10,041 bases of DNA from NCBI GenBank assembly GCA_013416795.1, contig RQSC01000520.1:1-10041 (forward strand). Reading direction: 5' to 3'. Position numbers and translations under genes: made by a program. The notes under the pieces are model-generated. The model saw only the letters and a program-made list of their open reading frames with translations. It was not told the origin of the DNA and made no database searches. The stretch comes from Prasinococcaceae sp. CCMP 1430. Its lineage: Eukaryota; Plantae; Prasinodermophyta. Shown here one piece after another: positions 1,547-9,947 of the stretch. Within the stretch, counting starts at the first letter, position 1. Every line of letters begins with the position of its first letter.

Positions 1547-2019
1547 GCGCTGGCGAACGCCGCCACAGCAACAGCGGCGCCGCTCCATCTGAAAAAATCC
1601 AAAATCAAATCCGCCCCGCATGTCCCGCAGCCGTGCAATGTAATCCTAATGAGGCAGACCACGAGGCGGGGGAACACGGATGTTGATGACGAGCCGAAAA
1701 AACAGCTGCGGCCGTGATTGAGTCATGCACCCGAAAGTTCCTTTCAACGAGAGTCGATCAAATCTCGCAGGCGTGCATCGGTCTCACAGTCAGCGGTGGG
1801 TCGCGGCGCGGATAACGCGCTGGGATCGATGGCACTCACGCCACGTTGCTGCTGTTGCCAGCAGCGCGGGTAACCCCCCTAAACCCCAAATGGCATTTCG
1901 CACGTGATGTCCGCATATTTTGAACTCGTTTTATTTGAGGGGGAGTTCGCATGCGCGTGGTCATTCCGTGTTTTTGTTTTCCCCCCAGCTGCAGCGCGCG
2001 CGTTCCTCACCCGACACCA

Positions 2020-2042
2020 GGGGGGGGGGAGGGGAGCGGGGG
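2020..2042 (+). other. G-quadruplex-type G-rich tract upstream of XDH
   Basis: G10-A-GGGG-AGC-GGGGG; the G10 run can supply two tracts. Confidence 0.55.
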
Positions 2043-2083
2043 AGCGAGAGGCGCGGCGCCGCGCCACAGGGGTGGCCCGCGTA

Positions 2084-2131
2084 CCACCCCACCCCACCCG
2101 TCGCCCCCTCCGTCCCCCCCTCCCCCTCCTC
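2084..2131 (-). other. C-rich tract on + strand (G-quadruplex on - strand, i-motif or polypyrimidine tract on +)
   Basis: ccaccccaccccacccgtcgccccctccgtccccccctccccctcctcc: at least six runs of 3 or more C. Confidence 0.55.
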
Positions 2132-2224
2132 CTCTGGTGGCAGCGGTGCGCCGCCGCCGGGGCTGATGCCGCCGTGCGACGCGAGCGCGGCCAGGCACCG
2201 CCGGCCGCCTCGGCAGCAGCGGCG

Positions 2225-5200
2225 ATGCGCGGCGCGCTCGGCGCGCGGGGCACGCTGTCGCAGGCCGCGCCGATGTGCTACGTCAACGGCCGGCGGCATG
2301 CGCTGCCGCACGGCGCTGGTGACGTCACGCTGCTCGAGTTCCTGCGCGAGAGGCGGCTCACGGGGACGAAGCTCGGCTGCGGCGAGGGCGGCTGCGGCGC
2401 TTGCACGGTGATGGTGTCGTCGTGGGACGGCGCGGCCGGCAAGCCACGGCACCGCGCAGTGAATGCGTGCCTCGCGCCACTGTACAGCGTCGAGGGCTGC
2501 CACGTGGTGACGGTGGAGGGCATCGGCAACCGCAATGCGGGGCTGCATCCGCTGCAGGCGCGGCTCGCGGCCGCGCACGGCTCGCAGTGCGGCTTCTGCA
2601 CGCCTGGCTTCGTGATGAGCGCGTATGCGCTCATGCGCGAGAACGCGGCACCGCAAGATGCCGACGTGGAGCGCGCGCTTGCGGGCAACCTGTGCCGCTG
2701 CACGGGCTACCGCCCCATCATGCGCGCATTCACCGAGCTGGCCAGGGAGGCACGCGAGGGAAAGGCCTCGGCCAAGGAGGTCTCGCCTGCGGGGGGCGTC
2801 TGCCCGTCGACGGGCAAGCCGTGCGGCTGCGGGGCGAAGAGTACCGCGAGTGCGGACGTCGCGGACGAGGGTGCCGCTGCCGCGAGGCAGGAGGAGGGGC
2901 TCGTGACGCCAGCCGAGCCCATCTTCCCGCCCGAGCTGCGCCGTCGCGTCGCAGTGCCGCTCTACCTTCCGGGCGAGCGCGCCACGTGGCACCGCCCGCA
3001 CGAGCTTCAGGCGCTGCTCGAGCTCGTGCGCGCGCATCCAAAGGCGCGGATCGTCGGTGGCAACACCGAGGTCGGCGTCGAGGCGCGCTTCAAAGGCGTC
3101 GAGGACGCGGTGTTGATTGCCCCAACGCACGTGCCAGAGCTCACCAAGCTCGAGGAGACCCCTAATGGCCTCCGCGTCGGCGGCGCGGTCACCCTTACCG
3201 ACCTCGAAATGCTCTGCCATGAGATCGCTGCCGAGCGTCCCGCGGCGTGCGCAGCCGCCAAAGCCGTCGCGTCGCAGCTCGAGTGGTTTGCAGGCGCGCA
3301 GATCCGCAACGTGGCGACCATCGCGGGCAACATCTGCACAGCGTCGCCCATCTCCGACCTCAACCCAATTCTCATTGCGTGCGGTGCCACGTTCACTCTC
3401 GCCAAGAGCGACGGCAAGGGCGCGGCCACGACGCGCGAAGTTGCCGCCGCGGACTTCTTCGTCGGCTACAGGAAGACGCTCTTGGAGGAGAGCGAGGTAC
3501 TTCTGGCGGTCACGCTGCCGCGGTCGGCGGCGGAGGGCGTTGGGGGTGCGCTCGACATCGTGCACGACTTCAAGCAGTCGCACCGCCGCGAGGACGACAT
3601 CGCCATCGTAACTGCCGGCGTGCGCGTGCTCATCGTGCCCCGCGCAGATGGCGCCTACCTAGTCAAAGAGGCGGGCGTCGGCATGGGCGGCGTCGCGCCC
3701 CGCACAATCCGCTGTGCGGCCGTCGAGGCGGCTCTTGTGGGCAGGGTTTGGGGCGAAGGTGCGCTCGACGCGGCGCTCAAGGCCGTGCGCCGGGACGTCT
3801 CGCTTCCGGAGAATGTCCCTGGCGGCATGCCCGAGTACCGCATGTCGCTGTCTTCGGCAGTCATCTTCAAGTTCTATGCCAAGGTGAGCCTGGAGCTGCC
3901 TGAGTCTTCCGTGGTCGATTTTGGCGGCCGTGCGCGCGCAGAGCTGCAGTCGGCCGCAGGCAGTGTCCCCCGGCAGGCGTGCACGGGCGAGCCCTCGTGG
4001 GCGCCGCCAATCGAGGGCACCCAGGAGGTCGGCCACGAGCGCGTGCACGTCGCCGCCGAGATGCAGGTGACCGGCGAGGCACAGTACGTCGACGACGTCC
4101 CGTACCCGGCGGGGTGCCTTTTCGCGTACCCCGTGCTCTCCGAGCGCCCGCACGCGAAGCTGCTGGCCGTGGACCCCACCAAGGCGCTGGCAATTGAGGG
4201 CGTCGAAGGGTACTTTGGGGCGGACGATGTGCCCGGCAACAACGCGATTGGGCCCGTCGTGCAGGACGAGCAGTGCTTTGTGGCCGTGGGGACGGCGGTG
4301 CCGTGCGTGGGCGCCGTGATCGGACTCGTTGTGGCGGAGAGCGAGGCCGCCGCGCGTCGCGGGGCGCGCGCGGTGGAGGTGCAGTATGAGGAACTCAGGC
4401 CCGTCCTGACCATCGAGGATGCCATCGCCGCGGGCTCGTACCTAGCAGGCACGGGAGAGAAACCGCACACGCTCGTCAAGGGCAATCCTGAAGGTGTCAT
4501 TGCCGCGGTCGAATGCGGCGAGGGGCCGGCCGGTGCCAAAGTTGTGCGCGGTGAGATAAAGATCGGTGGGCAGGAGCACTTCTACCTCGAACCGATGAGC
4601 ACGGTTGTGATCCCGGGAGAGGGGGGCGAGATGGTGATCCTCCAGTCGACGCAGTGCCCCAACAAGAGCCAGCGTATGGTCGCCGGTGTCCTGGGCTGTG
4701 ACGCCAACCGCATCGTGTGCCGCACCAAACGCATGGGGGGTGGCTTCGGTGGGAAGGAGACACGCGCCGCCTTCCTCTGTGCGGCAGCCGCCGTGCCCGC
4801 GCGCCACCTCGGGCGTAGTGTGCGCCTCGTGCTGGACCGCGACGTCGATATGAAGACTACTGGCACGCGCCACCCGTTCATGGGCCGCTACGCCGTCGCG
4901 CACGATGCCGAGGGCAAGGTTCTCGCCGCCGACGTGCAGCTTTGGTCCAACGGCGGCTATTCGTGCGACCTGAGCATCCCGATCATTGATCGCGCGGCCT
5001 TCCACTCGGACAACTGCTACGGCGTTGAGAACTTTCGTGTGCGCGCGACCGCCTGCAAGACCAACCTGCCGACCAACACGGCCTTCCGTGGCTTCGGTGG
5101 ACCGCAGGGACTTATTGTAGCTGAGACATGGATCGCGCACGTGGCCGTGTCGGCAGGCCTCGCCGAGGAAGTCGTGCGCGAGCGAAACATTTATACGGCG

Positions 5201-6367
5201 GGATCTGCGACGCCGTTCGGGCAGGAGCTGCCGGCGGACGAATGGAACGTGCCCGCCATTTGGTCGCAGCTCAAGGACCGAGCTGCCTTCGCGGCGCGCC
5301 AGGCCGAGGTGGATACCTTCAACGCTGCCAATCGCTGGCGCAAGCGCGGCCTCGCGATGGTGCCCACCAAGTTCGGCATCTCTTTCACGACCAAGTTCAT
5401 GAACCAAGGCGCTTCGCTCGTGCACGTGTACACCGACGGCACGGTGTTGGTGACGCACGGCGGCACGGAGATGGGACAGGGCCTGCACACGAAGGTGTGC
5501 CAGGTGGCTGCCGAGTCGCTGGGCGTGCCTCTGTCCGCGGTGCACGTGGCGGACACCACCACCGACAAGATCCCAAACGCTTCGCCCACCGCGGCCAGTG
5601 CGTCGAGCGACCTGTACGGCATGGCCACCAAGCTCGCGTGCGACGAGCTCATGAAGCGCCTTGCGCCGTACCGCACAGACGAGGGGCGCGACTGGCTTGC
5701 GAGTGCGGCGATGTCGGCGCACCTCGACCGCGTTGATCTCAGCGAGCACGGCTTCTACGCCACGCCTGACATCAGTGGGTGGGACTGGGACAACCCCTCG
5801 CCAAAGGGCCGTCCCTTCAACTACTTCACGCAGGGCGCGGCGGTCGCCGAGGTTGAGCTGGACTGCCTCACGGGCGACGCCGCCGTCAGGCGCGCGGACG
5901 TGCTCATGGACCTCGGGCGTTCCATCAACCCGGCCATCGACGTGGGGCAGATCGAGGGCGCCTTCGTGCAGGGCCTTGGCTGGTGCATGCTCGAGGAGCT
6001 GAAGTGGGGCGACTCGGCGCACGCGTGGGGCAGGCCGGGGCACCTCATCAGCGTGGGGCCGGGCGCGTACAAGATCCCCGCCGCGAGCGACGCCCCTGCT
6101 GACTTCCGCGTGCACCTGCTGCAGGGGGTCGAGAACCCGCGCGCGGTGCACTCGTCGAAGGCAGTCGGTGAGCCGCCCTTCTTCCTCGCGGCGAGCGCAT
6201 GGTGCGCGTTGCGGCAAGCGGCGGCCGCCGCGCGCTCTGACGCGGGCCACTCGGGTTTCTTCCGCCTCGACGCGCCCGCGACGCCCGAGCGTGTCCGCAT
6301 GGTATGCGCCGATGCGATCACCGCGGACGTGGCGGGCCCGCACTTTGTCGCCAGGCTCAGCTGCTAG
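2225..6367 (+). CDS. XDH: Xanthine dehydrogenase (2x[2Fe-2S], FAD, molybdopterin), ~1380 aa, intronless
   Basis: Fe-S motifs GTKLGCGEGGCGAC, QCGFCTPG and GNLCRCTGY. FAD region FAGAQIRNVATIAGNICTASPISDLNP and KQSHRREDDIA. Moco region GGQEHFYLE, GGGFGGKET (bovine Glu802), IIDRAAFHSDNCY (Arg880), TAFRGFGGPQ (Phe914), KFGISFT (Phe1009/Thr1010) and SKAVGEPP (Glu1261). The Glu802 and Arg880 equivalents favour XDH over aldehyde oxidase. The start is uncertain (ATG 2225 or 2273); the ORF-track start at 1904 is low-complexity and probably non-coding. Confidence 0.93.
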   Translation: MRGALGARGTLSQAAPMCYVNGRRHALPHGAGDVTLLEFLRERRLTGTKLGCGEGGCGACTVMVSSWDGAAGKPRHRAVNACLAPLYSVEGCHVVTVEGIGNRNAGLHPLQARLAAAHGSQCGFCTPGFVMSAYALMRENAAPQDADVERALAGNLCRCTGYRPIMRAFTELAREAREGKASAKEVSPAGGVCPSTGKPCGCGAKSTASADVADEGAAAARQEEGLVTPAEPIFPPELRRRVAVPLYLPGERATWHRPHELQALLELVRAHPKARIVGGNTEVGVEARFKGVEDAVLIAPTHVPELTKLEETPNGLRVGGAVTLTDLEMLCHEIAAERPAACAAAKAVASQLEWFAGAQIRNVATIAGNICTASPISDLNPILIACGATFTLAKSDGKGAATTREVAAADFFVGYRKTLLEESEVLLAVTLPRSAAEGVGGALDIVHDFKQSHRREDDIAIVTAGVRVLIVPRADGAYLVKEAGVGMGGVAPRTIRCAAVEAALVGRVWGEGALDAALKAVRRDVSLPENVPGGMPEYRMSLSSAVIFKFYAKVSLELPESSVVDFGGRARAELQSAAGSVPRQACTGEPSWAPPIEGTQEVGHERVHVAAEMQVTGEAQYVDDVPYPAGCLFAYPVLSERPHAKLLAVDPTKALAIEGVEGYFGADDVPGNNAIGPVVQDEQCFVAVGTAVPCVGAVIGLVVAESEAAARRGARAVEVQYEELRPVLTIEDAIAAGSYLAGTGEKPHTLVKGNPEGVIAAVECGEGPAGAKVVRGEIKIGGQEHFYLEPMSTVVIPGEGGEMVILQSTQCPNKSQRMVAGVLGCDANRIVCRTKRMGGGFGGKETRAAFLCAAAAVPARHLGRSVRLVLDRDVDMKTTGTRHPFMGRYAVAHDAEGKVLAADVQLWSNGGYSCDLSIPIIDRAAFHSDNCYGVENFRVRATACKTNLPTNTAFRGFGGPQGLIVAETWIAHVAVSAGLAEEVVRERNIYTAGSATPFGQELPADEWNVPAIWSQLKDRAAFAARQAEVDTFNAANRWRKRGLAMVPTKFGISFTTKFMNQGASLVHVYTDGTVLVTHGGTEMGQGLHTKVCQVAAESLGVPLSAVHVADTTTDKIPNASPTAASASSDLYGMATKLACDELMKRLAPYRTDEGRDWLASAAMSAHLDRVDLSEHGFYATPDISGWDWDNPSPKGRPFNYFTQGAAVAEVELDCLTGDAAVRRADVLMDLGRSINPAIDVGQIEGAFVQGLGWCMLEELKWGDSAHAWGRPGHLISVGPGAYKIPAASDAPADFRVHLLQGVENPRAVHSSKAVGEPPFFLAASAWCALRQAAAAARSDAGHSGFFRLDAPATPERVRMVCADAITADVAGPHFVARLSC

Positions 6368-6535: not shown

Positions 6536-7609
6536 TCAGAGCTTGGCGTCCACCATGGCAGCCATCATGACGACGTCCTCGGGGATGTCCTCGGTGGCCG
6601 TGGAGCCCACCACGAGGTCCATGTACATGGGCGAGATGCCGCTGCCCGGACCCTTGGTGGTGATCATCTCGCGCGTGATGGTGGTGCCCTTGGGGATCGC
6701 GACCGCCGACACGACCGACTTCGCGAGCTTGGTGAAGACGGGGGCCTCGCTCTCCATGCGCTTCTTCTCGCACGAGCCGAGCGCCTCCTCCACCACCGCG
6801 ATGTCACGAATGAGCGTCTCGATGCCCTTGGGCTCGAGCGAAGCCGCGTGGTCGCCGCCCTTCATGGTGCGATCGAGCGTGATGTGGCGCTCGACGACCT
6901 TGGCGCCCATCGCCACCGCGGCGAGCGAGATCTGCAGGCCCTTCTCGTGGCCGGAGTAGCCGATCACGCACTGCGGGAACTCCTTCTGGTACGTGCGCAG
7001 CACGCGCAGGTTGGTCTCGCTGACCTTCGTCGGGTAGGTGGAGGTGCACTGCAGCAGCACGATCTTGTCGACGAAGCGCGTCACCAGCTTGAGCGCCGTG
7101 CGCACGGTCTCCATCTCGGCCATGCCGGTCGAGAGGATGAGCGGCTTGCCCTTGCGCGCGGTGTGCTCCAGCAGCGGGAAGTTGGTGAGGTCGGCCGAAG
7201 CCACCTTGTAGAAGGGGCAGCCGACGCGGTCGAGGAAGTCCACGCTGTCCTCGTCCCAGCCCGACGCGAAGAAGAGGATGCCGACCTCGTCGGCGTACTT
7301 CTTCATCTCGTTCCACTCGGGCTCGCCCAGCTCGAGCGCGTGCTTGTGCTCGCCGTAGGTGGGGCCGAAAGAGTTCTTGTTCACGTACGGCTTCATCAGG
7401 CCCTCCTTGGAGAGGATGCGCTCCACGGTGCGCTTCTGGAACTTGACGGCGTCGCAGCCCACGTCCTTGGCCATCTTGATCAGCTTCTTGGCGATCTCCA
7501 CGTCGCCCTGGTGGTTGATGCCGGCCTCGCCGATCACGAAGCACTTGTTGGTGCCGCCCACGCTCACGCCGGGGGCGATGTCGAAGGCCTTGTCACAGAA
7601 GGGGACCAT
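6536..7609 (-). other. NANS: NANS/NeuB unit 2 (C-terminal): TIM barrel plus SAF/AFP-like domain
   Basis: [79 protein letters not shown]: the conserved catalytic and metal-binding motifs of NeuB/NANS. Confidence 0.92.
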
Positions 7610-9947
7610 GTCGGGCTTGATCGTCAGCGCCTGGCTGTTGACGGGCGACTCGGTGGACGCCTCAGGGAAGGTCGCGCTCACCACCTCGGGCTTCATCACG
7701 ACGTCCTCGGGGATGTCCTCGGTGGCCGTGGAGCCCACCACGAGGTCCATGTACATGGGCGAGATGCCGCTGCCCGGACCCTTGGTGGTGATCATCTCGC
7801 GCGTGATGGTGGTGCCCTTGGGGATCGCGACCGCCGACACGACCGACTTCGCGAGCTTGGTGAAGACGGGGGCCTCGCTCTCCATGCGCTTCTTCTCGCA
7901 CGAGCCGAGCGCCTCCTCCACCACCGCGATGTCACGAATGAGCGTCTCGATGCCCTTGGGCTCGAGCGAAGCCGCGTGGTCGCCGCCCTTCATGGTGCGA
8001 TCGAGCGTGATGTGGCGCTCGACGACCTTGGCGCCCATCGCCACCGCGGCGAGCGAGATCTGCAGGCCCTTCTCGTGGCCGGAGTAGCCGATCACGCACT
8101 GCGGGAACTCCTTCTGGTACGTGCGCAGCACGCGCAGGTTGGTCTCGCTGACCTTCGTCGGGTAGGTGGAGGTGCACTGCAGCAGCACGATCTTGTCGAC
8201 GAAGCGCGTCACCAGCTTGAGCGCCGTGCGCACGGTCTCCATCTCGGCCATGCCGGTCGAGAGGATGAGCGGCTTGCCCTTGCGCGCGGTGTGCTCCAGC
8301 AGCGGGAAGTTGGTGAGGTCGGCCGAAGCCACCTTGTAGAAGGGGCAGCCGACGCGGTCGAGGAAGTCCACGCTGTCCTCGTCCCAGCCCGACGCGAAGA
8401 AGAGGATGCCGACCTCGTCGGCGTACTTCTTCATCTCGTTCCACTCGGGCTCGCCCAGCTCGAGCGCGTGCTTGTGCTCGCCGTAGGTGGGGCCGAAAGA
8501 GTTCTTGTTCACGTACGGCTTCATCAGGCCCTCCTTGGAGAGGATGCGCTCCACGGTGCGCTTCTGGAACTTGACGGCGTCGCAGCCCACGTCCTTGGCC
8601 ATCTTGATCAGCTTCTTGGCGATCTCCACGTCGCCCTGGTGGTTGATGCCGGCCTCGCCGATCACGAAGCACTTGTTGGTGCCGCCCACGCTCACGCCGG
8701 GGGCGATCTGGAACTCGTTGGGCTCGAAGGGCGCGATCTTGGCGCCGAAGTACCCGTACTTGGGAGCGAGCTTCTGCATGATCTCCAGGTCGACCTGGCT
8801 GTCAATCTCCTGATACGTGTGCTCGGGCATCTCGTAGTGGGCAATCTTGCCGCCGAGGCGCGAGCCAGTGTCCTTGAGCGTGGCCGCGCGCGTGAGGTAG
8901 AACGCGCCGTTCTCAACGAGCTGGCCCTGCCAGTCCTGGCGGCGGGGGCGCTTGGCGGGGTTGTAGTCCAGCGCCTCGCCCGCCTCGTTCCAGTGGAAGC
9001 GGTGCGTGCGCACGACGGTCACGAGCGAGTCCGCCTTCTCCTCCTGGAGCTTGGCGATCGCGTTGGCGAAGTCGGTGGGCTGCGTGAGCGGCGAGGTCGG
9101 CTGGATCATGCAGATGACGTCAAACTCGTCCTTGTTGGAGCTCACGAAATCCTCGAGCACGGACTCGGACGAGGCCGTGTCCGTCGAGGCTGCGGCGGAG
9201 CGCATGTGCACCTTGGCACCCGACGCCTGGGGGAGGCGCGAGCGGCCCGCCAGGTTCAGCAGCGGGGTGTCCGCGGCGAGCTGCGTGTCAGCACGGGCAG
9301 GCGGACGATCGGGCGCGGTCGTTCAGGGAGCGCCCGATCGGAGCGGAGGGCAAGGCAGGGCCGACCTGCGCCTGAAGGGCGCGGCCGCCGTGGACACTGC
9401 GAAACGCACGCGCGCGCGATGGACCCAGGCGCGCGCGCGCGATGGACCCAGGCGGGGCGGAGTCGCGGCTGACCGCCGCACGTCGGTGACGAGAAAAGCG
9501 ACATGCTGGCCGCCGCACGCGGCGCAGCGCGGCGCGGCGCCGTGCGGGGTCCTCCCGAGGCATGCACGTGCAGCGCGTCCTCGAGCCGAGGAGTGCACCA
9601 CTCATGCGCTGCGTTGCGCTGCGCTGCGCTGCGCTGCGCTGCCAAGCGAGGGGGTGAAACGATTCCACGGAAAGGGGCGGCGCGGGGCGGCGGCGTGCCG
9701 CTGCCGGCCGGCCCCACCCCCGCAGCAGAAGCAGAATTCAATTCGCGCCGGGCGGGCTGCGCACCTTGGCGACGGCGGCGACCTCGTCGTCATCGGTCGA
9801 CACCCAGACCGCGCCGAAGGCGCCCGAGTCGATCGCCGCGCAGATCGTCCAGTCAATGAGCGGCCGCCCGCACAGGTGGCGCACGTTCTTGCGCGGCACG
9901 CCCTTGCTGCCGCCGCGCGCGGGGATGACGGCGACGACGCGCGCCAT
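6536..9947 (-). CDS. CMAS-NANS-NANS fusion: CMP-sialic acid synthetase domain plus two tandem sialic acid (9-phosphate) synthase units; exon 1 9765..9947, exon 2 6536..9226; 957 aa
   Basis: Exon 1 (61 codons) gives [21 protein letters not shown]...[13 protein letters not shown] phase-0 splice joins it to [10 protein letters not shown]..., restoring the CMAS segment VAKxxGAxVHxRS with no gap. Exon 2 is an open 896-codon frame with [21 protein letters not shown] and YGYFG, then two copies of the NeuB fold. Confidence 0.9.
6570..7579. repeat. 1010-nt direct repeat, copy A
   Basis: No mismatch found by eye against 7698..8707 (offset 1128). The overlapping off-frame ORFs 6804..7544 and 7932..8672 also translate identically. 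Confidence 0.92.
7667..8737 (-). other. NANS: NANS/NeuB unit 1 (middle of the fusion)
   Basis: Same motif set as unit 2; begins about 2 codons after the CMAS-terminal YGYFG. Confidence 0.92.
7698..8707. repeat. 1010-nt direct repeat, copy B
   Basis: Identical by eye to 6570..7579; separated from it by a unique in-frame 118-nt spacer (7580..7697). Confidence 0.92.
9409..9454. repeat. Perfect 23-nt tandem duplication inside the intron
   Basis: cgcgcgcgcgatggacccaggcg at 9409..9431 and 9432..9454. Confidence 0.85.
9606..9640. repeat. (GCGCT)7 pentanucleotide microsatellite inside the intron
   Basis: gcgct gcgtt gcgct gcgct gcgct gcgct gcgct (one imperfect unit). Confidence 0.85.

Follow-up and report, generated by a model that had tools for sequence, protein, structure and literature searches.

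The window analysed here is a stretch of 10,041 nucleotides (nt) from Prasinococcaceae sp. CCMP 1430 (contig RQSC01000520.1), and the subject of this report is a repeat that lies within a single gene on its minus strand. By the exon model described below, this two-exon gene encodes a protein of approximately 957 amino acids (aa), in which CMAS (CMP-sialic acid synthetase) is followed by two successive NeuB/SAF units. The central parts of the two units were found to be identical over 1010 nt, and the sequences bordering these cores were strongly diverged yet still in register. We consider it probable that the duplication is old, and that its core has been homogenised separately in each of two lineages by gene conversion or unequal exchange. 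We favour such concerted evolution because the paralogous units are identical within a lineage, the lineage-specific substitutions are present in both units, the silent sites are identical as well, and the boundaries of the identical run are sharp and differ between the lineages.

Extent and edges of the exact repeat

The two copies were compared base by base at an offset of 1128 nt, which equals 376 codons. Positions 6570-7579 (the core of unit 2, minus strand) and 7698-8707 (the core of unit 1, minus strand) formed a single exact run with 0/1010 differences, and the first mismatching pairs at its ends were 6569/7697 and 7580/8708. The same pair was recovered, as family D1 together with nested families, by a separate repeat search of the window. 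Chance origin is impossible for an exact repeat of 1010 nt within a 10-kb window. Another family from the repeat search, D3 (8707-8743 versus 7435-7471, 70%), was regarded as chance.

The edges of the run were sharp. When identity was scored in 30-nt windows, it remained 1.0 across the run. In the windows beyond it, the values fell to 0.83, 0.53, and 0.30 towards higher coordinates and to 0.57 and 0.47 towards lower coordinates, after which the background was reached. In the in-register flanks, approximately 30 nt on each side, the identity was approximately 57%. On the N side, the flank of unit 1 (8708-8743) was identical to that of unit 2 at 20/36 nt, compared with 11.3 ± 2.8 under the null (p ~0.002). 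On the C side, the tail of unit 2 (6536-6569, including the TGA stop codon at 6538-6536) was identical to that of unit 1 at 16/27 nt, compared with 8.5 ± 2.4 (p ~0.003). The null consisted of random in-frame, codon-aligned segments taken from the genes of this window. Past approximately 12 codons on either side of the core, similarity between the units was undetectable.

Between the two cores lies a linker of 118 nt (7580-7697, minus strand). It consists of the tail of unit 1 (KPEVVSA...) and the N flank of unit 2 (..PFCDKAFD), both diverged, with approximately 23 codons of poor conservation between them. In free local alignments, the linker had no significant match to the 3' untranslated region or to the end of the CMAS part. 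A derivation of the linker middle from an old 3' untranslated region was thus not demonstrable.

The GC content at third codon positions (GC3) of the core was 0.98, an extreme codon bias. Under the codon usage of the window, silent differences would be expected in 80-132 of the 338 core codons at saturation, but not one was found. Therefore, the identity at third codon positions is not explained by codon bias. GC-biased conversion was also considered and dropped, since the GC3 of the core (0.979) was not distinct from that of the CMAS part or of a neighbouring CFA20 gene (0.94-0.97).

These observations bear out an earlier note on this DNA, which had been made by eye. Its claim that the cores are identical up to and including the third codon positions holds for 1010 nt at the 1128-nt offset, and its claim that the flanks are diverged but in register is upheld by the two flank comparisons given above. 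All the flank peptides that it quoted were found in the minus-strand translation (the C-side pair VMKPEVVSA and VMMAAMVDA, and an N-side pair of 12 residues each), and the synonymous GTG/GTC difference at 7697/6569 was confirmed.

Comparison with related proteins

Relatives were obtained by a word search of a protein database with the open reading frame (ORF), and they fell into two close clusters; all the evidence from them is at the protein level. The first cluster is 98-100% identical to the window protein, and the second, 86% identical to it, includes a two-unit protein of 958 aa, P0135. The period of 376 aa and the linker of 40 aa were the same in P0135 as in the window. The two units of P0135 were identical to each other over 343 aa, compared with 338 aa in the window, and the identical run in P0135 began two residues later and ended seven residues later than that in the window.

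When the units of the window and P0135 were compared with each other, 30 of the 336 residues of the common core differed. Every one of these differences was present in both units of its lineage, and no difference was found between the units within a lineage. In the other parts of the protein, the two lineages were 78% identical in CMAS and identical at 12/40 residues in the linker. A maximum-likelihood tree of the four units and eight outgroup NeuB domains grouped the units by lineage, and the support for the four-unit clade was 100/99. The earlier note had read the repeat as an old duplication with a homogenised core, and had named within-species clustering of the units as support for concerted evolution. 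Both are supported by the comparison with P0135, which was made on proteins: the differences are lineage-specific and common to both units, and the tree follows the lineages.

The flanks and the linker carry characters that bear on the age of the duplication. In both lineages, the N flank reads PFC...FDI in unit 2 and PFEP.EFQI in unit 1, so that two residues, C and D, are unit-specific; moreover, 9 of the 12 residues before PGVS in the unit 1 flank were common to the window and P0135. The lineages also share L.I.P in the middle of the linker, a segment without an equivalent in unit 1. The same period, the same linker length, and these few shared characters argue for one duplication before the lineages split, although the support that such sequence characters lend is moderate. 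In addition, VDAKL was common to the unit 1 tail of P0135 and the unit 2 tail of the window, which suggests that it may represent the ancestral tail, overwritten to a different extent in each lineage.

One-unit forms were present in both clusters. In the first cluster, the two-unit proteins (P0001, P0121 with 12 contigs, P0126, P0130, P0131, and P0133) had 889 or 938 aa, two fragments (P0122 and P0125) started just upstream of the linker and continued through unit 2, and five one-unit proteins (P0123, P0124, P0127, P0128, and P0132) had 513 aa, which is 376 less than 889. In the second cluster, the one-unit proteins P0002 and P0136 had 582 aa, again 376 less than the two-unit P0135. The layout of the one-unit forms was the same in both lineages, namely the N flank of unit 1, a single core, and the tail of unit 2; the contig of P0136 is 26 kb long. 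The one-unit forms shared flanking haplotypes with the two-unit forms, except for P0127, which had a private C-terminal variant. Each of the 513- and 582-aa forms may be a real pop-out allele or the product of a collapsed assembly. Among the proteins retrieved by the word search, which would have included one, there was no three-unit protein. Of the copy-number alleles predicted in the earlier note, the contracted ones thus have counterparts in the database, which may reflect assembly collapse, and no expanded one was found.

Among approximately 11 distinct allelic proteins of the first cluster, four amino acid sites were variable, all of them outside the cores (Q/H and A/S in CMAS, S/I in the linker, and K/Q at the C-terminus), and there was no amino acid polymorphism in either 338-aa core.

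Other collections were searched as well. An alignment search of metagenome contigs for related loci yielded a single distant locus (L001, 39% identity), a search of viral contigs found no relative, and genome contigs contained no match to a degenerate pattern that represented a clade-specific peptide.

Probable homogenisation of the core and alternative explanations

The sequence pattern suggests the following course of events. An in-frame tandem duplication of 1128 nt would have doubled the NeuB/SAF module (of the sialic-acid or Kdn-9-phosphate synthase type) of a CMAS-NeuB fusion gene before the split between the lineage of the window and its 86%-identical relative. Since then, the central region of approximately 1 kb in the units would have been homogenised repeatedly, and separately in each of the lineages. 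Homologous recombination between the two units is the likely route, by non-reciprocal gene conversion during double-strand-break repair, by unequal sister-chromatid exchange with intermediates of one and three units, or by both. The data are compatible with gene conversion and with cycles of such exchange, and we infer recombination as the mechanism from the pattern of identity.

The diverged edges can be accommodated in this course of events. A conversion tract requires homology on both sides, so that the outermost codons, approximately 12 at each edge, may have been spared. On the C side, moreover, a tract that copied the unit 2 tail into unit 1 would import the stop codon and truncate the protein. 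The edges may thus have remained diverged but in register because tracts rarely reach the outermost codons and because a C-side tract would be truncating. The mutation rate of Prasinoderma coloniale is approximately 2e-10 per site per generation (PMC11884799). If this rate applies, the zero differences in 2 x 1010 nt place the last homogenisation within approximately 7 million generations (95%).

Several points weigh against this account. Conversion is read from the pattern of the sequence, and no event was directly observed. The two-unit contigs in the database may be short-read graph assemblies that traversed one collapsed core twice, in which case their units would be identical by construction. 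The base-perfect identity of the units in the window is likewise a property of the assembly, which only reads could certify. The evidence for a single origin of the duplication is thin, for the orthology of the flanks depends on two residues together with the equal period and linker length, and the identity counts in the 12-aa N flank are ambiguous (unit 2 of the window matches unit 1 of the sister at 6/12 residues and unit 2 of the sister at 6/12). The P0135 cluster may represent another species or a paralogous locus, and either is possible. Finally, as the sister was compared on proteins, the identity between its units covers amino acids and not silent sites.

Three other explanations were weighed against homogenisation. 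The first is an artefact of assembly or polishing, in which there is one real unit, or two clearly different units were made identical by the assembler or by a short-read polisher. An exact tandem repeat of 1 kb is typical of what graph assemblers collapse or traverse twice, and the one-unit contigs, together with the contigs broken at the core edge (P0122 and P0125), show that the region is difficult for assemblers. Furthermore, short-read polishing was used if the window belongs to the published assembly of Prasinoderma coloniale (PMC7455551). However, at least eight distinct proteins of the database, which come from other assemblies and cover four haplotypes, contain the linker (P0001, P0121, P0126, P0130, P0131, P0133, P0122, and P0125). 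Since the linker requires two units, its recurrence indicates that at least two units exist and that the duplication is real, and the artefact that the earlier note had named as the alternative is weakened accordingly. Collapse also presupposes units that are nearly identical, whereas 9% of the core residues differ between the lineages, so that the similarity within a lineage is far higher either way. In addition, single reads span the 2.2-kb repeat if the assembly is the PacBio one. We therefore regard an artefact as unlikely.

The second explanation, which we hold to be slightly less likely still, assumes that each lineage acquired its own tandem duplication recently and independently, and that the units of each pair are identical because they are young, with no homogenisation. 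It would account for the identity of the units within each lineage, and the one-unit forms in both lineages could then be the ancestral state, still segregating. Nevertheless, the two lineages agree in the 376-codon period and in a linker of 40 aa, and certain linker residues without an equivalent in unit 1 (L.I.P, and then PFC and FDI) are common to both. A young copy, moreover, would not show flanks of approximately 57% nucleotide identity beside a core of 100%. The third explanation is that purifying selection and extreme codon bias kept two old copies identical without recombination. In its favour, NeuB is a conserved enzyme and many amino acids of the core are encoded by a single codon. 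It is nevertheless very improbable, since the silent differences expected at saturation are missing and selection on independent copies cannot yield 30 between-lineage replacements that are each present in both units.

Concerted evolution of tandem duplicates, as favoured here, has classic examples in the human G-gamma and A-gamma globin genes, which have a sharp conversion boundary, in polyubiquitin repeats, in ribosomal DNA, and in the high-identity WD40 arrays of fungal NWD/HET-E genes. The window gene resembles concerted tandem duplicates in that the paralogous units are closer to each other than the orthologous units are between lineages, the silent sites are identical, the boundary is sharp, and contraction and expansion alleles are predicted. 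It differs from the classic cases, which are arrays of short repeats or separate genes, in having only two units, each of which is a complete catalytic module of approximately 340 aa in one reading frame, and its second-lineage evidence is at the protein level.

Gene model, predicted enzyme, and significance

The exon model was built from reading of the sequence together with tblastn, and exons 1 and 2 were analysed separately; the resulting length, approximately 957 aa, compares with 958 aa in P0135. A minus-strand ORF at 6536-9211 contains the C-terminal part of CMAS and then two NeuB domains, each with an SAF domain, as recognised by Pfam. The N-terminus of CMAS is supplied by an upstream exon: in a tblastn search, the N-terminus of P0135 matched 9941-9768 (83% identity) and the match resumed at 9223. 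Exon 1 (9765-9947) comprises the ATG (9947-9945) and the first 61 codons of CMAS, including the nucleotide-binding motif of CMAS, PARGGSKG, and 48/58 of its residues were identical to residues 2-59 of P0135 (E 3e-30). The intron (9227-9764) is 538 nt long, of phase 0, and bounded by GT and AG, in agreement with the interruption of the P0135 homology between 9768 and 9223. The first part of exon 2 (8744-9226) encodes the C-terminal two thirds of the CMAS domain, covering profile positions 64-181 of CTP_transf_3 (PF02348) with an E value of 1.4e-9, above the curated cut-off.

Each of the two unit cores consists of a NeuB TIM barrel and an SAF (antifreeze-like) domain. NeuB (PF03102) was matched in two stretches at profile positions 1-240/241 (E 1e-163), and SAF was also matched in two stretches (E 1.4e-20). 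The NeuB and SAF profile matches were near full length in each unit, and homologues in the PDB were found at E values of 1e-40 to 1e-45.

The intron contains a tandem pair of 23 nt (96% identical) at 9406-9451 and a GCGCA-type microsatellite at 9606-9644, and the latter pairs with 9507-9545 as an imperfect inverted repeat. P0135 is continuous across the position of the intron; either the sister is intronless there, or P0135 is derived from a transcript.

The NeuB of Neisseria meningitidis is a domain-swapped homodimer, in which the antifreeze-like domain caps the active site of the partner and supplies Arg314 (PMC6795526). The equivalents of its Glu25, Lys53, Gln55, His215, Glu234, and His236 (E30, K58, Q60, H223, E242, and H244 of the 735-aa query) were invariant in alignment A3, and the catalytic and metal-binding residues were kept in both units. 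The position equivalent to Arg314 was Lys in the alignment to 1VLI, and the R314K variant of the N. meningitidis enzyme stays active (PMC6795526). Both units are thus predicted to be NeuB-family sialic or nonulosonic acid synthases, and their substrate may be N-acetylmannosamine or mannose, phosphorylated or not. The N. meningitidis enzyme (PDB 1XUU, 1XUZ, 2WQP, and 4IPI) has the same catalytic residues and the same NeuB TIM barrel and SAF domain as each unit of the window gene, but the window gene joins two such units in one chain behind a CMAS domain and has Lys in place of Arg314.

The two-unit part (735 aa, with alignment A3) was modelled by AlphaFold with a mean predicted local distance difference test score (pLDDT) of 92.4 and a predicted template modelling score (pTM) of 0.91. 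The pLDDT was below 50 only at the first six residues and at linker residues 365-376. One modelled unit overlaid the whole N. meningitidis NeuB chain, with the barrel and the cap in the crystal orientation (350 columns, template modelling score 0.89-0.90, root-mean-square deviation 2.7 A). The model is compatible with the hypothesis that the twin units form a NeuB dimer within one chain. We propose that the duplicate may have been kept because the units would pack as a covalently linked, domain-swapped NeuB homodimer. A point that weighs against such a dimer is that this reading of the model depends on the pTM value. In its fullest form, the proposal is that the units are a single-chain NeuB homodimer that has been kept symmetric by continual conversion since the algal lineages split, with one- and two-unit alleles coexisting in wild populations of both; we regard this as speculative and rather doubtful.

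A comparable arrangement is known in the beta-carbonic anhydrase of Porphyridium purpureum, a single-chain pseudo-dimer that arose from the internal duplication of a homodimeric enzyme. The window gene is like it in being algal and in encoding a monomer whose tandem repeat would recreate the homodimer formed by related enzymes. However, the halves of the carbonic anhydrase are diverged, whereas the units of the window gene are identical and their pseudo-dimer is a model.

The combination of a synthase and a cytidylyltransferase in one polypeptide has parallels in environmental CMAS-NeuB fusions in the database (P0004-P0008, approximately 575 aa) and in actinobacterial NeuB-phosphatase-CMAS proteins (e.g. 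Nonomuraea, approximately 678 aa). Those fusions have one NeuB unit, and two identical units were found only in the window cluster and its sister. P0016 and P0017 (964 aa) likewise unite two modules of the NeuB type with one of the CMAS type in a single chain, arranged as NeuB-SAF, a second NeuB-like-SAF, and a cytidylyltransferase. Unlike the window gene, they have the reversed domain order and strongly diverged NeuB modules with no homogenisation, and their identity to the window protein is 34%. Since their architecture differs, single chains with two NeuB modules are taken to have arisen more than once. In the literature searched on Prasinoderma with sialic acid, no paper on this gene turned up, and PMC13213038 does not treat it. 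The main paper on microalgal Kdn synthesis makes no mention of Prasinoderma, gene fusion, or duplication.

Two other genes lie on the plus strand of the window. The ORF at 1904-6367, intron-free and 1487 codons long, encodes a xanthine dehydrogenase/oxidase with the complete domain set (2Fe-2S, FAD, and molybdopterin); it is convergent with the sialic-acid gene, and the two stop codons are 168 nt apart. In the ORF at 82-1209, residues 184-367 form a CFA20 domain (cilia and flagella associated protein 20). This is of note if the genome is that of Prasinoderma coloniale, which is non-flagellate; the genome paper of that species discusses the flagellar genes that it retains. With these two genes as neighbours, the window is therefore eukaryotic. 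Its GC content was approximately 67% across 500-nt blocks, which fits only loosely the 69.8% of the published Prasinoderma coloniale genome. That genome is haploid, and its assembly from PacBio reads was polished with short ones (PMC7455551; PMC11884799).

The concerted evolution of tandem duplicates and the CMAS-NeuB fusions are known; what is new is a clean, base-exact case in a CMAS-NeuB-NeuB gene. The mechanism has long been known, and the case is an illustration rather than a new principle. Its value lies in its compactness: within one gene, two complete catalytic modules have a base-exact core and unhomogenised edges, and there is a second lineage in which the run ends elsewhere. If the genome is that of Prasinoderma coloniale, the gene could be used to study the limits and rates of conversion tracts in a haploid picoalga with a measured mutation rate. 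It also calls for caution in annotation and in the assembly of metagenomes, as the same gene stands in databases as proteins of 513, 582, 889, 938, and 958 aa. If one- and two-unit alleles truly coexist, they would be a natural experiment on covalent versus non-covalent dimerisation of a sugar-synthesis enzyme, and the possibility that a single-chain NeuB dimer is joined to the enzyme that activates its product bears on how microalgae synthesise sugars of the Kdn and sialic-acid type.

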